Shown here: positions 29,392 through 42,831 of the stretch, one piece after another
Layout: each line of letters opens with the position of its first letter
Position numbering within the stretch: the first letter of the stretch is position 1
Source: Tetramitus jugosus
Taxonomy: Eukaryota; Protista; Heterolobosea
Assembly (NCBI GenBank): GCA_937625935.1
Contig: OW569359.1
Coordinates: forward strand, 62,001-126,000
DNA length: 64,000 bases
Reading direction: 5' to 3'
Notes under the pieces: generated by a model
What the model was told of the DNA's origin: nothing
The model's input: the letters and a program-made list of their open reading frames with translations, nothing else
The model's database searches: none
Translations under genes and position numbers: made by a program

Positions 29392-30745
29392 TTTTTTTTT
29401 CCATACAACCATGCGCAAGCACACGATTGCTCATTTATTGACTTCAGCTGAAGCAGATTGTTGTGACTTCAGCTGAAGCACACGATTGCTCATTTATTGA
29501 CTTGTTTTGTGAGTGACTACCCGTAGGGCGTCATTCACTCTTCTTCTCGTGTTGTCCCCGACGGTGGACCACAGGTTGGAAGAATCACTCTGGTGAGTGG
29601 TTTGGTTGATGCCCTTCATCAAAGGGTGTAACCTTGTAGTAGGACCGTCAATGGACACAGAGCCATCTGTTGTTGGTTTCTTGTTTTGGGCCTTGTTGCT
29701 CATCAGATCACCCAGTGTGATCCTAGCACTCCTCTTCTTGTTGTCATTGAGTTGTGGACTTTGAATCTCCTTTTCGGAGTCGTCCACATCCACAATGACT
29801 GGTTCGTCCTCAGTCAAACCATACCTTTTGCGTGCAGCAGCCAGCTCCATTGCAGCAATTTCCTTTTTCACCCTGGCGAACACTGGAGAAGTGGCATTCA
29901 CTTGCTCCAGAATTCACCGGTTCTCCGTACTGAGCTGCACAACAGGCACTGATGGCAGTGGTGTTGCTACAGTCCTCTGTTCTAGTGGCTCCCATAGCTC
30001 AGTAGCAGTGCTTTGGGCAACTTCTTGTTCCGGTATTGGAACCGGTTTGTTGCCCACTTGACCCTTTGTCTTTCCCAATTCCTTGGTGAGTTCTGTGACC
30101 TGTCGACGCAGTCCGTCAACCACCGTCAGCAGCTCCTCGTACATCTTTGTCAACCTCTTGTTGACAGCATTGAGAGGATCATGTGGTCTCTTGACGTATC
30201 GAGTGACCGTGGCTTTTACCTTGTTCTTTCCACTGAGCACTGCTCGTGCATAGGTTTCATCACCCATGACCACGAATGCAGTGTCACGCTTCTTGAGCAC
30301 ACTGGCAACCTTCTCAGGCCCCAGTAGCTTCTTGATGTTGTCCACTGACATGTTCTTCATGTCATGAACGACCACCTTTCTTGTGCAATCGACACTGCGC
30401 TTGGGTGCAGCAGTGCTGTTGCCAGTCCTCCTCTCTTTGTTGAAGAACTCAACACACTCATAGATGCGGTCATCCTTGACCGTCCCCCATGCAACAAAGC
30501 GTTGCTGGCCTTTCCTCTTGATGACTTGGACTCGGTTGAGCCAGTCACCAAACTCCTCTCCTATCTTTCTTGCCAAAGATGACTGAGAGACACCACCATT
30601 ACCGTTGCCAGTAATGGCGACCTCTCTGTCACTTGGCGCAGAGCCTTTCCGTGCCGTGGTCACATAACGGTTATTGCCGTATTCCTTTAAGGCCACCAAT
30701 TTTGTTGAATCACCAAATATGTGATGCCGTTTTTTTGTGTTTTTG
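29392..30745 (-). mobile_element. Near full-length ORF1-only non-autonomous non-LTR retroelement (RRM-like + coiled-coil ORF of about 400 aa, one in-frame TGA)
   Basis: Poly(A) remnant 29392-29400; candidate TSD AATCATACGTA 29381-29391 / AATGATACGTA 30746-30756; second copy at 52283-53169; ORFs 29914-30699 and 29494-29901 are in frame. Confidence 0.8.
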
Positions 30746-34204: not shown

Positions 34205-37180
34205 ATGAATCCAGACTCAACCAAACCCACAACCTCCACTAGCACAAGTGATGCACTAGACAGAGCACATTACACCATCCGTGATAAAGAGATGGTGTCT
34301 GGCTATTGTCAGAAGCTTGATGTCTCACAGAACATTGAGAGATTAGCTCATTATCTGTTCGAAAAGGTCAAAACGAAAAATAATGTATGTGTGGCATCGT
34401 CCCTTCATTCATCCATATGGAAATATTGTTCATTACTCACAATCCTATTCACTTGTTTTTCTCCCGTTGTGTCGTTTGTTGATTTTGATAGAATGAGAGA
34501 GAAGCTCTGAGAGAAAATCAATACTATGCTCTGTGTTCCATATTTATCGCCAGTCGTATCAACTACAAGCCAAATGCACAAAAACAAGACGAATATACTG
34601 ACATTATGCACAATATTGAAAAATTTGACTTGAGTATCAATGGACTGTCAATTGATCAAATACGGAGGATTGACACCTCGTTAGAGTAAGTCTATATTTC
34701 TGGTTTTTTGATTAACATTTCACACTTGTTGTTGTGTTTGTTTTTTGTTGGAAGAGATGATTGAAATTGTTAATCGCTTTTTGTTGTGGTCAAACAGGTT
34801 GGTTGAATTTTTAGAGATGCTAAACTCCATGATTGCATTGTTCAAGTTGGAAGACTCTGAACTATTTACACAATTGAAGATTGTACAGAAAAAGCTGATT
34901 ATTTTGGATTGTGTCTACAAGGAGTTTAGTGACTACTTTAAAGACCATTATGTCACGGGAGACAACTATCCATTTCAGACTCTAAAATCATCTTGCTGGA
35001 TGTTATTCTTGCTGTTAGGATATGAACCTGAAGTTAAATCCACTGATTTTGAGTCCATGTATCAGTTGTTGCAAGCCCTATTGTTGTTTTTGTGGGAACA
35101 CGTGCCACAAAATTTGAAAATTGTATCTGCTGATTCCGGTATGTTATTCATGCTCTGTTTATCTCTTCGTTTTTCCCGTTGGCCATTTCTCACACTCTAA
35201 ATTGACCAACTATTAGCTTCAATATTTAAGCTGTTTGGTATCAAGTCCGAATCGGTCAATTCCTCGCTCATCGATGTTCCTAAAAGATTAGTAACACAGT
35301 TGATGGAGAGCGAAGCCTTATCTGGTGAAACAATCGGCGATAATTTCCTAAAGCTTCCAGAATTGGAAGAAACATTTGCAAGAAAATATTTAACACTTTC
35401 TAATCCAATTGACTTTGATGGCCGGTTGTTCGACACAATCAATTCAATCAACACTCCTATTGGATCATCTAAAATGTTATTATCTGCACCAGTGTACCAG
35501 CTCAATCCACAGAAGATTAGAGATTTCATTGAACAAAATCCTGAGCTACGGTCACCATTACGATCACCTCGATCGACTTTCTATCAACCAAAATCAGTTA
35601 TGCACGCTACTTTGCACTCTATTCAACTGCTTTCAGTGAAAGTGGGTGCACAAAATGACGGTCCAGATGCAGAGTTGCAGCACTTTTTTAAATCGTGTGA
35701 TACTGACCAAACCGAAGCGATCACAAACAGGCTACAAAAGTTGATTGATATTATAGCACCTGCTCTACAACTGAATGAAGAGAAACAAAACATAAGAGCA
35801 AGCATGATCAAAAAGATATATTATCAAGTGTTAAAAGATATGCTCATCGGGGAGCAAAATAGACTACAGAAGAGTAATTTTACTGCCCTACTCTCAAATG
35901 AGGATTTCCACAAGTCACACGTTGTCTGTTCTGTTGAAGCCGTACTGTTTGCATACAACATGAAGGACACACTGGAATTTGAAGATATTTTGCGACTTAT
36001 TCAATTGGAACCGTTTGGCTTATCGGTAGTGATAGAGAGCTTTGTCAATCATGCAAGTTGGCTCAATAGCACATTCAGACGCCATTTCCGCTCCATCGAA
36101 GAAAAGTTGTTGGACAGCTTGGTTTGGGCCAGTGACTCATTCTATGAGAAGATAAAACAACACACCGAGAAAGAAGAAGTCCCACTTCCACACCCAGGCA
36201 CAGTAACACCAATGGCCAAGAAGAAACAAAGAGTGTTTAATGTGTATGATCAAGCCAACCAGCAGGAACAAAATCAACAAAAGAACTCTATTGCCGTCCA
36301 GTTATTCTTTAGGAAGGTGTATCAACTAGTGTCGCAACGAATAACTGATCTATGCAAGGAATTTAACCAAAAGGGTGAGCCAGTTGATGTCATATCATCT
36401 GATATCATGAAACAAATTTGGCACATTGTGTGGTACGTTTTGAACTCTCGTCACTCACTGATGCGCAACAGACACATAGATCATATGATCATGTGTGCAA
36501 TGTATGCTGTGTGCAACAAAGTGAACAAGATGAACTGGATATCATTCAAGGACACGATTCAAAACTATAGAACGATATGCGAAACCAATAGAAATATATC
36601 CCCTGTGGAAGCTGGGAAAATATTTGGACAAGTGCTACTCGATGGAACCAGGACAGGCGATATCGTTAAGTTTTATAACAACATCTTCATCCCTGAAGTG
36701 AAAGATTTCATTTTACAGTCATCGCCAAAGGCTGGAACCAATATTTACCTTCCTGATATGCCACAAGCAACTTCAGCCCTTCAATCTCCACAGCGTCAGC
36801 GAGTCTCCAAGTCTGCCAATGTATTTATATCACCCATGAGATCTCCAAGCAGCAAGCACAACCCTCTGCGATCACCTATGGCTCATTCGAATGCAAATGT
36901 TCTGAGCCTAACACCAAGAACCAAAGCTCTTTACTCGTTTAGGGAAGCTTGCACTGAGAAGTTGATTGGTCTTGATTCTGTCGATCGTTCTGTCAAGCGT
37001 GCTTTATCATTCACCGATCCTGAGAGTGAGAGTAGTTTGGAACCATCTAGCAAGTTCAGAAAACTGCGAGGACCGAGAAGGCAAATTGATTTTGGGCCAA
37101 TGAGCACAGATGAAGCAGATACAGCACCAGAGTCAACGACGACTCAATCCGATGATGAAACAAATGCTCAATCTGAATAG
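34205..37180 (+). CDS. RBR: Retinoblastoma-related pocket protein (multi-exon 5' part)
   Basis: RB_A: YYQVL..E..RL..LL..EDFHKS..CSVE, VIESFV, RHFRSIEEKLLDSLVW; RB_B: FFRKVY, LMRNRHIDHMIMCAMYAVC, GDIVKFYNNIF; many S/T-P CDK sites. Confidence 0.92.
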
Positions 37181-37246
37181 ATATTGAAGTATTTATTTCC
37201 ATATTCGAACCGTCATTGAATTGTCATTAAGGTGGCGGTCTACCAA

Positions 37247-37277
37247 CTCCTCGTATAAATAGGGCTCCTCGTATAAA
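37247..37277 (+). repeat. Subterminal 13-bp direct repeat CTCCTCGTATAAA x2
   Basis: Copies at 37247-37259 and 37265-37277, immediately inside the left TIR. Confidence 0.85.
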
Positions 37278-37887
37278 ATGATTTTTGTTTGAGAAAAAAG
37301 AAGCAAGATGTGGGTCGATCAAAAAACATCAGAATCCATACACAAGTGTTGATCATCCACAATACTGTGAATTCTCGGTTACAAGCAACACTTTCGTGCT
37401 TTGTGATTTCTCTGCGGCGGAGGTTCGGGCTTCTTTATTTGGGCTAGTTGACAGGAACATTGAATCTCTCTGGAGAATACAAAAACACACTTGGATGATG
37501 AGTCATCCACACGTTGTCATTAAACAAGTTCTGAGTCAAAGATGCAATACTTGGTAGAGTTTCATATTGGAGTCTCCTCCAGTAGATGATTTCGGTTGTT
37601 GTGTGTATTGGTTCAGAGGATGGACGATGGACGTTTTCTTTCAAGACGCGAGATTGAACCACCACCCAAGAAGAAATAAAGCATTTGCCAAACGAGTAAC
37701 GTCATCTTTCTGTTGTCTAAATCTCAGTTTCCTCTAAGCTGCGGAATTGGTGCAGTTGTAAAAATTTCCGTTGAGACTGTCTTTACAACGGCAACGGCCA
37801 TCTACCTCGGTTTAAAAAGCGCTGTCTTTTTCGCTGTTTGATTCAACCCACACAACAAATACACCACACAACAAATACAATAACATT

Positions 37888-39816
37888 ATGCCACGAGGCG
37901 TACCTAAGGACGGCAAGAGAAAGAGAAAGAGAGAGACTGTCAAAAAGGATGAATACTCATCACATTACGTGGTCAAGGTCGGTCTGAAGTCTCTATTGTT
38001 GCATCATCCAACTCTGTTACCAATCATACAAACTCAAGCTCTGGAGATTACAAGGATTGCTCTTCGACTCACAAGATTTATAAACATATTTGTTTTGAGG
38101 CACTTGGAGAACAATTGTGATATCCCTCTCTTGAATCAAGGATTTATTCAACGAATCGGTTCAGTGTTGTTTGGACGCAAGTCGAAGACAAGAGACGATA
38201 ATGTCAACCTCATCAACGGGTCTGTCAACATGGATGACGTAATAATCAAGCTAAGGAAGATTTGTGAGAAGTTATCCAAATCCATCAATTACGTTGCAAA
38301 GTCTCTCAATGTCAATATTTCTAACATGCTCAAGTTCACATTGGAACAAAGACTGAGAAAGTATTTGAGAGTGAGGATGAATCAATTGCACAATGGTCAA
38401 TCAATACCAAGGTCTGAATACAGAAGAGTCGTAGAATACATCATCAGAAAGTTGACATTTGTCACTCCAGTTTATGATTTTGTCAAACTGCCTCCAAAGG
38501 AGTTGATAGAGACTATTCCTGTGTTGATCCAAGAGGTTCGAACACTTGTTGGTGCTGAAACCGATGAAGTGATTGATGAATCGTTTGTGAACAACAACAC
38601 CAATAACATGCTGAAGTTTTACTGGCATGCTCAACAGTTTCTGATTGGCAATGATACGAAATCATTTGCATTGTTGCCCTTGTCCCACTTTAAATGTAGA
38701 TGCATGGAGATAGGTACAACGGACCTGATAGACATGCTCCAACAGAAGAAGAAACCAGGAGTACAAAAGAAGGGTAATGTACAAGTTATTGAACCCATTG
38801 AATTGAAATACAATCTCAAGTGTTTGAATATCGGAACAAAGAAGATTCAAATCGACTCTATCAGAACTGACGGTATTCAGGCCTCTGTTGTTCTCAGACA
38901 TCAACTCGTTGGCAATCACAAGAACAATAAGGCAAGGGAATCCAAGGGCCAGAAAGAAGCAAAGAAGAGAAAGAAAGAAACAAGTATGAACGAAGGTGCT
39001 GAATATTTGGTTGGAATTGACCCGGGTATTGTTACGTTGGTGAGTTGTGCAGATTCAGATGGCAAGAAGTGGGAGTTTTCTAACAAACAATATAGACATC
39101 TGTCCCACCATTCAAAAAACTCCAAGCGATTGTTGAAATACAAAGCAGAATGGAACGAAATGAATGAGAAGAACTTGGATGAACTCCATAACTCAATCAA
39201 ACAGGCCGGTGTACCAACAAGTGGTCTGTTCCTTGAACACATCAATTCTGTAATGAAAGTCGAGGATGATTTGTTGAATTTTTATTGCACCCCAAAGGTG
39301 AAGAGACTGAATTGGGATAGCTATATAATGAGAGATAAGACGATTGCCAATGTTATGAATGACTTTCGAAAGAGAGCAAATGGAAGAACCATGTTAATTG
39401 GGATGGACAATGCTGGTTTTGGTCATTGTTACAAAGGACATGCTCCAACACCAAAAGGAAAGCTATTGAAAAAGTTGAATGAGAACTTCAAAGTGAAAAT
39501 GATCGACGAGTTCATGACAAGTCAGAAATGTCATCATTGCCATTCTCACATGAAGTCAGTCAAGCATAAGAGAATAGACAAGAATGGAACGTTGAATGTC
39601 TCTGTCGTCCGAGGAGTTAAACAGTGTGCAACCACTAAATGTTTAGTGACTCACAACAGAGACATCAATGCGGCCAAGAACATGCTCCATCTACTGAGAA
39701 CAGAAATGGATGGACAGTCACGTCCCGATGCCTTCAAGAGGAAGAAAAAGGTCGCAAAAGAATTAATCAAAATGGTGGAACACCTCCAAGGCTCACTCCA
39801 TCAAGCTGCTATGTAA
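37888..39816 (+). CDS. Fanzor1 (eukaryotic TnpB-family) RNA-guided DNA endonuclease
   Basis: RuvC-I VGIDPG (D378), RuvC-II IDEFMTSQKC (E541), CHHC..CATTKC Zn ribbon, RuvC-III HNRDINAAKN (D592); Fanzor1-type SFALLP, SIRTDG.QASV, FY.....KR..W, GQSRPDAF; N-terminal NLS KRKRKR. Confidence 0.92.
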   Translation: MPRGVPKDGKRKRKRETVKKDEYSSHYVVKVGLKSLLLHHPTLLPIIQTQALEITRIALRLTRFINIFVLRHLENNCDIPLLNQGFIQRIGSVLFGRKSKTRDDNVNLINGSVNMDDVIIKLRKICEKLSKSINYVAKSLNVNISNMLKFTLEQRLRKYLRVRMNQLHNGQSIPRSEYRRVVEYIIRKLTFVTPVYDFVKLPPKELIETIPVLIQEVRTLVGAETDEVIDESFVNNNTNNMLKFYWHAQQFLIGNDTKSFALLPLSHFKCRCMEIGTTDLIDMLQQKKKPGVQKKGNVQVIEPIELKYNLKCLNIGTKKIQIDSIRTDGIQASVVLRHQLVGNHKNNKARESKGQKEAKKRKKETSMNEGAEYLVGIDPGIVTLVSCADSDGKKWEFSNKQYRHLSHHSKNSKRLLKYKAEWNEMNEKNLDELHNSIKQAGVPTSGLFLEHINSVMKVEDDLLNFYCTPKVKRLNWDSYIMRDKTIANVMNDFRKRANGRTMLIGMDNAGFGHCYKGHAPTPKGKLLKKLNENFKVKMIDEFMTSQKCHHCHSHMKSVKHKRIDKNGTLNVSVVRGVKQCATTKCLVTHNRDINAAKNMLHLLRTEMDGQSRPDAFKRKKKVAKELIKMVEHLQGSLHQAAM

Positions 39817-39920
39817 ATCCCGATTATGTAGGAGCGTTAAGGTGTCTTATCGGGAAACCATAATTTTTTTATTATGGCTTGATCGACAGTAGACCGCCAC
39901 CTTAAACCATGGTTCCAGAA
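39817..39920 (+). ncRNA. Predicted Fanzor omega-RNA (scaffold to about 39905, plus flank-derived guide)
   Basis: Lies between the stop codon and the right end; stems TCCCGAT/ATCGGGA and CCATAAT/ATTATGG; loop TTAAGGTG complementary to terminal CACCTTAA; boundaries inferred. Confidence 0.65.
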
Positions 39921-40129: not shown

Positions 40130-40768
40130 TTACAACATAACTCTCTTTTGTTCAGATTGACTAGTGTGATCCTCAATGTCCGTCGAATCCCATGGATACA
40201 CGATCCATCTGTCCGATAGGTCCTCACCGCTTCTATAGTAGTCAATCTCATCATCAGAGTTATTGTTGGTGCCATGTGCAGCTACATCGTGTTGGAAGCC
40301 AATGGATTTCCAGTGACCATTGCATCTCTTACTCTTTTGCTTGTTGTGCACGACAAAGATACCGACCTTGCTTGGGTTCATCTTTCTGACTTGACTGACA
40401 CAGAATGCCAGTGTGGTTCGTGTATCGTCCACCTCATCCACAATCAGAACCGTTTTACCAGTAATGTCACCAGAGTCAATCCATTGAGTCATTTTCACGA
40501 CGTCTCCTGCCTGCTTTGTCTGATCATTGTATAACTCCAATGATACAGTCTTGATAGGCACTCCTAGATGTGTGCGCAACATTCGAGCGGGGATAAAGCC
40601 TCCGCCACCTATAGCCAGAATCAAATCTGGTTGAAATCCGTCTTGCTTGATCAGAGTGGCTGCGTTCTGGCATAGAACGTGAACCTGATTGTAGGAGCAG
40701 TGATATTTACCGCTGCTTTGCCCAGTAGGCGTAGTGGTGGTATTTGTTTCGACGTTGCAGGAGGACAT
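40130..40768 (-). CDS. Xanthine/hypoxanthine-guanine phosphoribosyltransferase (Hpt1/Xpt1-like)
   Basis: PDLILAIGGGGFIPARMLRT; PRPP motif VLIVDEVDDTRTTL; VVHNKQK; WIVYPWD. Confidence 0.88.
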   Translation of the reverse strand: MSSCNVETNTTTTPTGQSSGKYHCSYNQVHVLCQNAATLIKQDGFQPDLILAIGGGGFIPARMLRTHLGVPIKTVSLELYNDQTKQAGDVVKMTQWIDSGDITGKTVLIVDEVDDTRTTLAFCVSQVRKMNPSKVGIFVVHNKQKSKRCNGHWKSIGFQHDVAAHGTNNNSDDEIDYYRSGEDLSDRWIVYPWDSTDIEDHTSQSEQKRVML

Positions 40769-41217
40769 GAGAAGGAGCGGGAGACCTGGAAGTGGCTTGT
40801 TTGACAAAATGGCTCTCTTATTATTAAGAAAGGGGTGTAGGTTGTGTTTTGGTTTTCTTGCCCATCCCCTCTAACCGAGAGTAAAATGCAAGCGCGCACA
40901 AAGAGTTAAATAGCTCTGAACCTGGCCAGGTTGACCGAGTTAAATTCCTCGGATTAATATGAGGTCCCCATTCAAGATTCACCGCCCTGGGTTCTTTCCA
41001 ATTTGTGAAATTTGAGCCAATCAAAATTGATCCGAGTCAACCACGCGAAATTGAAGGCAACTCTGTTTGAGTTTGAACTCACAGTATAAAAGGAATTGGA
41101 CTGCAAATTATGAGAAACGCTTGGGAGAGGTGGTGGAAAACAAAACAACTCCCACCCCACACATTAATACAATAACAATCAAGTCTGTTCAGACCCACGG
41201 AAAAATATCTACCAATA

Positions 41218-42831
41218 ATGGAATTCAAAATTGCCCACGAAAAAATTGTAATCATCGACTTTGGTTCACAATACACGCAACTCATTGCGCGAAGAGTCAG
41301 AGAACTCAATGTCTACTGTGAAATTTTCCCCTACGACAGCCTGCCAGAAGATTTCTATGAGCGCGAGCTATCCAAAGCTCACGGTGTGATTCTATCAGGT
41401 TCCCACGCCAGTGTACACGAGAGTAATGCTCCAAGGTTTGCTCATCTACAGAGACTGAGGCGCGAAAAGAAACCTCTGCTAGGAATTTGCTATGGTGCTC
41501 AACTGATTGCTTTCGAGAGTGGTCAAGCTGCTGTCGTTGCCACAGAGCACAGAGAATACGGTAGAGCTCATTTGCGTCTCTGTCCTGAAGCTCTCAACGA
41601 TCAAGAACCATTTGGTCAACTCCTGTTTGACTCCAGTCTCGATGATAGTGTCGTATGGATGAGTCATGGTGACTCCATTCTTCTCAATGAACCCTCCAAG
41701 ATTGAACAACAAAAAGAAGAAGGATCGATCGAAGTCATTGGCAAGACGGATTCGATTCCAGTGGCTGCATTCCACATTCGTGGTGAGCCAACATATGCTC
41801 TTCAATTCCATTGTGAAGTGACCCATACAGCATCAGGCATGCACATTCTATTCAACTTTTTGACAAAGGTTGCCAAGTGTTCTCAATCATGGACACCATC
41901 TCATTTCATTCAAGAGACTGTGGACAGATTGAGGAAGGAGATTGGTTCAGAAGATAGAGTTGTTCTTGCACTTTCAGGAGGTGTTGACTCCTCTGTCACA
42001 GCCATGATACTGAAGAAGGCAATCGGTGATAATTTGCACTGCATTTTCGTCAATAATGGTTTACTGAGATTGAATGAATTTGAACAAGTGTTGGAAGGTT
42101 ACAAGGAGATGGGACTCAATATCACTGGAGTCGATGCTACAGAACACTTTTATAGTGCTCTTGCTGGTGTATCTGATCCAGAATTGAAGAGAAAGGCAAT
42201 TGGACGCACGTTTATCGAGGTATTCGACAGAGAGGCCAACAGAATTCAAAATGTGAGCTATTTGGCACAAGGAACCATTTATCCTGATGTCGTAGAGTCT
42301 GTGGGAGGTGCTACCATCAAGTCACACCACAATGTTGGTGGTCTACCCGACACCGTGAAACTAAAGATTGTTGAGCCATTGAGACTGCTATTCAAGGACG
42401 AAGTGAGAAGAGTCGGTGCTCAGCTAGATATTCCTCAAGTCATCTTGAACAGACATCCGTTCCCTGGTCCTGGGCTCGCTATTCGTATCCTGTCTGATGT
42501 CACTGAACAAAAGGTGAGGACATTGCAACAAGTGGACGACATTTTCATTAACGGATTGAGAGAAGCAGGTCTATATGACCAAGTGTGGCAAGCTGGAGCA
42601 ATGTTGTTGCCTGTGAGCTCAGTTGGTGTTATGGGTGATGGTCGAACATATGAGAATGTGGTTGCCCTTCGAGCTGTCACTTCCATCGATGGAATGACTG
42701 CTGACTTTTCTCATTTGCCATTCGAGTTCTTGGGAAAGATCTCCAACGAAATCATAAATCAAGTCAGAGGAGTCAACAGAGTTGTCTATGACATTAGCTC
42801 TAAGCCTCCAGCAACTATTGAATGGGAGTAG
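41218..42831 (+). CDS. guaA: GMP synthase (glutamine-hydrolysing), bacterial type, intronless
   Basis: [69 protein letters not shown]. Confidence 0.97.

Follow-up and report, generated by a model that had tools for sequence, protein, structure and literature searches.

The role of Fanzor nucleases in their native hosts has been stated as unknown (PMC10432273), and a review lists experimental proof of homing for TnpB and IscB only, not for Fanzors. Here we describe an element at positions 37227–39905 of a 64,000-nucleotide stretch of the Tetramitus jugosus genome (contig OW569359.1, positions 62,001 to 126,000, forward strand; hereafter the window) which, judged from its sequence and that of its relatives, is probably a non-autonomous Kolobok-type transposon carrying a Fanzor1 (Fz1) gene and its omega-RNA, and maintained by RNA-guided homing. 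That its family constitutes a natural record of eukaryotic Fanzor RNA-guided homing in a cut-and-paste (Kolobok) host has, in our estimate, an even chance of being correct.

The closest described system is Spu-1 of Spizellomyces punctatus, whose protein SpuFz1 (PDB 8gkh; PMC10432273) is the best sequence and structure match of the protein studied here, at an identity of only 17–18% in structural alignment. Akin to our element, Spu-1 is a multi-copy, single open reading frame (ORF) between terminal inverted repeats (TIRs) in a genome without a transposase, and it has, as is predicted here, a right-end omega-RNA of ~90 nt, a two-stem scaffold and a target-adjacent motif (TAM) that consists of the target-site duplication (TSD) and upstream bases. 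It differs by its TA duplication and 30-nt TIRs (here TTAA and 13-bp GG..CC TIRs), and the family described here has in addition three interchangeable end types and captured host fragments. GtFz1 of Guillardia theta (PDB 9cer) shares the Fanzor1 fold (template-modelling (TM) score 0.60) and a TTAA TAM, but its third catalytic residue is Asn and its omega-RNA measures 150 nt, compared to D592 and a shorter predicted scaffold here.

Among carriers, the Kolobok superfamily (PMC9587614), known from Naegleria, has TTAA and 5'-RR..YY-3' termini in common with our element, and a DxxH-type transposase stands behind an identical TIR on the metagenome contig L080 (with the homologue P0154); the Kolobok accessory genes (KolX, lambda-like exonuclease, RecQ, DEDDh and His-Me nucleases) are listed without a Fanzor. 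The Chlamydomonas Fanzor1-Helitrons CRe-1, CRe-2 and CRe-3 (PMC3627910; PMC10288648) resemble the present family in their 5' truncation, 3' overabundance, 7–19 bp duplications right after a fixed tetranucleotide and extra captured sequence at the 5' end, although their host is a rolling-circle element, the tetranucleotide is TTTT and the pattern is read as one-ended transposition, whereas here a DDE cut-and-paste carrier uses TTAA. Insect-virus Fanzor1 elements (SFav-1, HVav-1 and relatives) are likewise Fanzor-only, with 13-bp TIRs, a 4-bp TTAN duplication, and a TIR and TSD that fold into the guide scaffold, a likeness drawn from their description; the papers on them assign no superfamily. 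Finally, the mechanism that we propose is that of TnpB restorative homing (IS605/IS607), in which the empty donor site is cut and then repaired by copy-back; for TnpB and IscB the proof is experimental, whereas our evidence is genomic only.

The Fanzor1 protein and the ends of the element

A first-pass annotation, made from the sequence of the window alone, had read the element as an intact Fanzor1 transposon of Fanzor1 rather than IS607-linked Fanzor2 type, with an uninterrupted 642-amino-acid ORF, three RuvC acidic residues, a Zn ribbon and perfect 13-bp TIRs flanked by TTAA. All of this was borne out. The frame runs for 642 codons without a stop, D378 (GIDPG), E541 (IDEFMTSQKC), D592 (HNRDIN) and the four zinc cysteines are in place, and an alignment of 95 sequences showed triad and cysteines to be invariant or nearly so. 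The two ends (37227–37243 and 39889–39905) are complementary at 17 of 17 positions, and the 17-nt TTAA+TIR end matched twice in the window, compared to 0.01 matches expected. The features of the element are as follows.

37227–37230, + strand: TTAA, 5' TSD; with the preceding A, the predicted TAM of the empty site
37231–37243, + strand: left TIR, type A (GGTGGCGGTCTAC), with a 5'-GG terminus of Kolobok type; identical in the transposase-bearing L080
37247–37277, + strand: two subterminal repeats (CTCCTCGTATAAA); the core motif is common to type-B left ends and L080
37361–37618, + strand: one-ended piece of an unrelated TIR element, inserted at TA; copy L020 is without the piece
37724–37887, + strand: upstream region common to all subfamilies, likely promoter and 5' untranslated region (UTR), with a 16-nt tandem repeat at 37848–37879
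37888–39816, + strand: Fanzor1 ORF, 642 amino acids, with D378 (39019–39021), E541 (39508–39510), D592 (39661–39663), a basic N-terminus (putative nuclear localization signal) and a zinc finger (C548/C551/C580/C585)
39810–39830, + strand: predicted omega-RNA stem-loop 1, 7 bp, overlapping the stop codon; both-side changes in three of seven pairs
39837–39905, + strand: predicted omega-RNA stem-loop 2, closed between an internal TTAAGG and the terminal CCTTAA
39889–39901, − strand: right TIR, type A
39902–39905, + strand: TTAA, 3' TSD
39906–39920, + strand: predicted guide, ~15 nt of host right flank, different in every copy; length after PMC10711439 and PMC13565253

Every feature tested makes the protein a Fanzor1. 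Pfam recognized a TnpB/Cas12f TNB domain in it (E-value 8e-10), SpuFz1 was the only significant match among the sequences of solved structures (E-value 2e-15), and the RuvC D-E-D triad aligns to that of SpuFz1. An AlphaFold model built from 95 homologues (predicted local distance difference test 91) had SpuFz1, PpFz1 and GtFz1 as its top seven Foldseek matches (E-values ≤3.5e-16, TM scores 0.60–0.69), compared to TM scores of 0.23 with a Fanzor2 (9b0l) and 0.24 with a TnpB (8h1j). The rearranged RuvC-II described for Fanzor1 (PMC13565253) is present, with E541, six residues and then C548, and the length of 642 amino acids falls within the ~600–800 amino acids of a Fanzor1 with enlarged REC. 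Fanzor2/IS607EU was rejected as an assignment: TIRs and TSD are present, there is no second ORF (serine recombinase) and the TM score is 0.23; the hidden Markov model of IS607 TnpB gave the protein 16.9 bits, against a cut-off of 350. The putative nuclear localization signal would be KRKRKR at residues 10–15, and the subterminal repeats are putative transposase-binding or promoter sites.

Close relatives of the protein (60–97% identity) were found in a few metagenomes only, and the remainder are mostly 22–40% identical. Two Fanzor1 homologues of 62–64% identity (L062:2437-4600 and L063:1631-3940) have in common ~40 nt after the stop, and no TTAA/TIR was found at their ends, so that the association with these TIRs is not universal in the clade and the same clade has another carrier.

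Kolobok is defined by a TTAA duplication together with 5'-RR..YY-3' termini, a combination that distinguishes it from piggyBac (PMC9587614). Our element has both, the TTAA TSD and the TIR termini, while the third Kolobok hallmark, a DDE transposase with C/DxxH inside the element, is missing from this copy: neither six-frame reading of the left arm nor Pfam revealed a transposase there, and the element at 37227–39905 is thus non-autonomous, having no transposase of its own. A source for the missing activity is suggested by a metagenome scan with the 17-nt end, which returned 24 TIR matches, about half of them chance (unrelated, mostly GC-rich DNA). One of these contigs, L080, has the identical 17-nt end and the subterminal motif, followed by an ORF resembling Mutator-like/Kolobok transposases (PF20700, E-value 1.3e-5, score 24.8 against a cut-off of 26.5; Atlas score 0.95). 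The L080 ORF shows the first aspartate motif, and its homologue P0154 extends through the second aspartate and the DxxH (motifs DFRW, HDQD and DIGH); the third catalytic residue was not seen, and the Kolobok class is assigned by motifs and Pfam. The flank of L080 is 100% identical to piece C36 of our own T. jugosus assembly (G000; 26.35 Mb in 56 pieces named C1, C2 and so on, to which all genome-wide counts and searches below refer) as far as TTAA+1, and the part belonging to the element is unmatched at the DNA level in G000. A conspecific strain therefore has a transposase behind this TIR at a site that is empty here. By its ends and this conspecific link, we assign the element to the Kolobok type as a non-autonomous member. 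In no contig did a transposase and a Fanzor occur together between these ends.

Membership in piggyBac was rejected: the element has the TTAA, but its termini are GG and no PF13843 transposase lies between the same TIRs. piggyBac termini begin with a 5'-pyrimidine and are usually CC. Kolobok is not among the Fanzor carriers named in a 2026 review (PMC13565253), in Bao and Jurka (2013) or in Yoon (2023), and seems to be a carrier of Fanzor1 new to the surveyed literature. Two further TTAA-GG ends with variant TIRs (C8:617476-617492 and C38:404503-404519), which had no linked Fanzor match, are possibly other Kolobok families or chance.

Predicted guide RNA, target motif and junction scars

The right end of the element is predicted to fold into two stems (z-score −2.96): a first stem-loop of 7 bp spans the stop codon, and TTAAGG/CCTTAA closes a second, long stem; since the terminal CCTTAA pairs with the internal TTAAGG, right TIR and TSD would belong to the scaffold. 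In nine variants, 88% of cells pair and the first stem shows compensatory changes, and the covariation score was equalled by none of 500 shuffles, a figure that is not a probability, as the rows are related. Rfam gave no match for the predicted omega-RNA. Solved Fz1 omega-RNAs have a 7-bp stem-loop 1 (SL1), SpuFz1 and PpFz1 have the SL1 and SL2 layout (PMC11423790), and Fanzor1 scaffolds that take in TIR and TSD have been described before (PMC10711439). Contigs of a soil metatranscriptome comprise pieces over both ends of the element, although contigs cannot show RNA ends or strand. We predict a structured right-end omega-RNA whose variable flank serves as guide. A scan of the window and the copy loci revealed no guide targets elsewhere.

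At the right end of a filled site, CC-TTAA stands before a perfect match to the guide, and the TAM must therefore extend upstream of TTAA if the element is to be spared. The base preceding the left TTAA was T in 15, A in 5 and C in 1 of the 21 left ends scored, while the mirror base, that following the right TTAA, was G in 13 of 32 (Fisher p = 0.004 for this count against the single C on the left). The predicted TAM is W/D-TTAA, which would spare filled sites. For SpuFz1, two conserved bases upstream of the TA duplication are known (PMC10432273), and the TAM of GtFz1 is reported as TTAA(N) with no upstream requirement stated.

Some copies that have lost their left TIR have junctions of the kind expected if empty sites are cut. 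The copy on C48 starts with A-TTAA followed by 9 nt that repeat the beginning of its own right flank, a junction that was read directly, and these bases join the interior of the element via a 3-nt microhomology. In four further copies without left TIR, scars were sought as at least 7 right-flank bases anchored on TTAA, and in two of them, C3 and C2b, TTAA plus at least 7 nt of right flank matched as predicted, at the left edge and on the correct strand. These matches sit 180–260 bp outside the known arm; intact A' copies have ~800 bp and a TIR there. By background, TTAA+7 matches 3–6 times per genome, or ~1e-4 per kilobase of one strand. As Fz1 enzymes cut 14–21 nt past the TAM, the junctions are as expected if an empty site was resealed, cut and then copied back incompletely from the right end. 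The 5' truncations with 7–19 bp duplications after TTTT in Chlamydomonas Fanzor1-Helitrons are very rare in Fanzor-less Helitrons (PMC3627910), and a role of Fanzor in them has been tentatively suggested (PMC10288648); this precedent supports the attribution of the scars to homing and lowers its novelty.

Copy family, proposed homing cycle and alternatives

The first-pass annotation had called the insertion recent and proposed that genomic copies and empty sites be counted; that the element belongs to a family of many copies, and has part of a different transposon in its left arm, it had not noticed. G000 contains more than 30 large copies, four other full-length ones being 97–99% identical to the copy in the window, and alleles of this locus without the element were found as well; such identities together with empty alleles indicate recent spread. 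All complete copies read are flanked by a TTAA duplication. Near-full ORFs number 20, of which 19 are free of stops and all keep the triad, and their ratio of nonsynonymous to synonymous substitution rates (dN/dS) against this copy is 0.15–0.33, which supports purifying selection on the Fanzor1 ORF in the family. The nuclease had been called probably active, and this selection, the TAM-like asymmetry and the junction scars lend that view indirect support.

The copies are mosaics: their 5' halves give another tree than their 3' halves, and a subfamily of 65% identity elsewhere still matches at ~100% over the last 80 codons. Omega-RNA-like right ends number 37, compared to 21 scored left ends. 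Three end types occur, A, A' and B (GGATGTAGTTCG; B at 21 places), all with GG..CC termini and a common subterminal motif and mostly paired like with like. Type B is native to the right end of a 42%-identical Fanzor from another sample, and a ~40% relative on C32 lies between B ends; B-ended copies of the gene studied here would thus most simply be chimeras. Left of 37724, most sister copies carry other DNA, and ~20 hold fragments of VPS35 that derive from a single full VPS35 gene (C22:81999-84489); some are 97–100% identical to it and others ~90%, which suggests repeated copying from the host gene. Beside the VPS35 fragments, left arms also contain an antisense frame that looks F-box-like by eye.

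In three samples, contigs cover the element 5 to 30 times as deeply as the flanks, a ratio that is no copy number but is consistent with a multi-copy family. In run X4, 37703–37869 and 39707–39873 are covered 4–5 times as deeply as the ORF, a hint that short copies exist in which the guide RNA is kept and the gene lost; two internally deleted copies that retain the ends without the gene were found (L071 and L081). Empty alleles are of two kinds. A contig from a groundwater sample joins 37216 to 39904 without the element, and in a minor contig from a run of organism A four bases link 37217 with 39937, which reads as an empty-site TTAA, ~3 flank bases and a ~29-nt deletion across the expected cut position. 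This deletion, known from a single contig that may stem from the source culture, is at most a hint of a cleavage trace. An 11-nt segment with a GTCATT direct repeat in the left flank (37212–37228) is missing from both empty alleles and is possibly an older repair footprint.

We propose the following cycle. A Kolobok transposase acting in trans would excise the element and insert it at TTAA. The right end would be transcribed, as homologues and folding suggest, into a two-stem scaffold ending in TIR and TTAA, followed by the ~15-nt flank guide. Fanzor1 would then recognize W/D-TTAA with a guide match, a combination found at the empty site only because the filled right end reads CC-TTAA, and would cut ~14–21 nt downstream of that motif. 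To judge from the scars, the distal end would invade a filled sister, homologue or ectopic copy and resynthesize the element from its right end. Complete repair would restore the element; after incomplete repair the left TIR would be replaced by TTAA and several bases of flank; and mosaic ORFs, swapped ends and captured host fragments would result from template switches. Repair primed from the guide side would explain the scars, the homogenized right ends, how one nuclease gene came to be exchanged between three end types, and how pieces of host genes were captured. If this is true, filled and empty alleles in a culturable amoeba make native Fanzor function directly testable, the family bringing together in one culturable protist numerous intact copies and empty alleles, a TAM prediction that is specific, and homing-like scars, and the same cause is suggested for the variable duplications of the Chlamydomonas Fanzor1-Helitrons. 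As a tool, the protein is one more orthologue, ~25–30% identical to its nearest distant database relatives, and its natural REC/WED variants, down to 65% identity, have one guide scaffold in common.

Several observations weigh against this cycle. The C3 and C2b scars are 11-nt pattern matches known by coordinates only; the pattern is absent from the other two copies tested, C1 and C2a; and the junctions of C38 and C45, at or next to a bare TTAA, can be explained by plain excision-gap repair. The covariation set is small, with nine related rows, and the RNA runs are contigs in which the ORF is only thinly covered. On the side of the carrier, the L080 ORF ends at the contig end and scores below the Pfam cut-off, with a stop after two codons in the first short frame of the contig; G000 has no intact Kolobok transposase, a broken relic (C1) and a scrap (C50) being all that was found; and intact-looking transposases of piggyBac, also a TTAA user, are present (PF13843 frames C18:150044-151294, C30:266267-267517, C18:38735-39766, C39:393561-394592 and C34:198515-199333), of which two pairs (C18/C30 and C18/C39) score equal and are thus probably recent duplicates.

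These points bear on two alternatives. Fanzor1 could be a passenger or non-homing helper, with scars, mosaics and VPS35 pieces arising from post-excision gap repair by short template switches between two broken ends, which we regard as unlikely. Cut-and-paste elements that carry no nuclease are well known to undergo abortive gap repair and to capture gene fragments, which counts in favour of this explanation, as do C38, where a few filler bases accompany the left TTAA, and C45, which is truncated on the right at a bare TTAA. The stated ignorance of a native Fanzor role (PMC10432273) also leaves room for it, but the three scars are of one polarity, with guide-matched flank bases behind an intact TTAA, the like pattern of Fanzor1-Helitrons is very rare where Fanzor is lacking (PMC3627910), and a passenger would leave both a dN/dS near 0.2 and the asymmetry at position −1 unexplained. 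It is equally doubtful that ends of Kolobok origin are now moved by the resident piggyBac, or are immobile here and persist by homing or gene conversion. While the duplicated long PF13843 frames on C18/C30 and C18/C39, that on C34 and the lack of an intact Kolobok transposase in G000 would suit such a history, no PF13843 gene lies near any type A, A' or B end in G000, TTAA with GG termini sets Kolobok apart from piggyBac, the identical end precedes a Kolobok-type ORF in the conspecific contig, and type-B left arms retain a WFCSGCG remnant like the first ORF of L080 (weak alone).

For the motif, the avoidance of C before the left TTAA might reflect an asymmetric target preference of the transposase and not a TAM, so that self-protection would work otherwise. 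This we consider improbable, even though only 21 left ends were scored and the GtFz1 TAM has no stated upstream requirement: CC-TTAA next to a perfect guide match at the filled end needs some upstream discrimination, and the TAM of SpuFz1, too, takes in two conserved bases ahead of the TA duplication. Much less credible still is that the insertion matters for regulation of the retinoblastoma-family (RB) gene beside it. With 46 bases between the RB stop and the element, the 3' UTR may be altered, but other copies lie less than 50 bases from frame ends, use TTAA as stop or split a frame, and wild alleles are without the insertion. The cycle of RNA-guided homing in a Kolobok-type carrier thus remains the explanation that we prefer.

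Host neighbourhood and other insertion sites

Two host genes face the element, which lies between both of their 3' ends.

35300–37180, + strand: retinoblastoma-family gene, main ORF, outside the element (Pfam RB_A, RB_B)
40130–40807, − strand: phosphoribosyltransferase gene, convergent with RB

The RB gene named by the first-pass annotation is real (RB_A 6e-43, RB_B 1e-27), and the insertion does follow closely on its stop, which ends at 37180, 46 bases before TTAA. The prominence given to RB in that annotation was not supported, as sister copies are equally near other genes, in stop codons or inside a frame. The C19 copy (L002; C19:419646-422321) splits a frame of 396 codons. In two copies TTAA itself serves as the stop of a long frame; those on C33 (L005) and C6 (L006) are inserted at the stop codons of long frames that are left intact. 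The C33 frame looks by eye like prolyl-tRNA synthetase, and the C6 insertion site is common to samples L087 and X15. The RB neighbourhood is thus incidental, and nothing points to an RB-specific role.

A recent survey gave a transposable element content of 0.14% for T. jugosus, which is less than this Fanzor family alone would cover; the published genome comprises 26.3 Mb in 55 scaffolds and a mitochondrion, with two haplotypes (PMC11106597). The foreign end at 37361–37618 belongs to a TIR family with 30–31 bp TIRs that start after TA, found at C14:514043-515791 and C28:86541-88272 (1.7 kb) and at C45:332440-332820 (0.38 kb), and would be Tc1/mariner-like by its TA feature only. Elsewhere in the window, 29914–30699 holds a 261-amino-acid ORF with a coiled-coil-like C-terminus and no Pfam match, and at 40130–42831 the phosphoribosyltransferase frame stands head-to-head with an intron-free GMP synthase frame of 537 amino acids.

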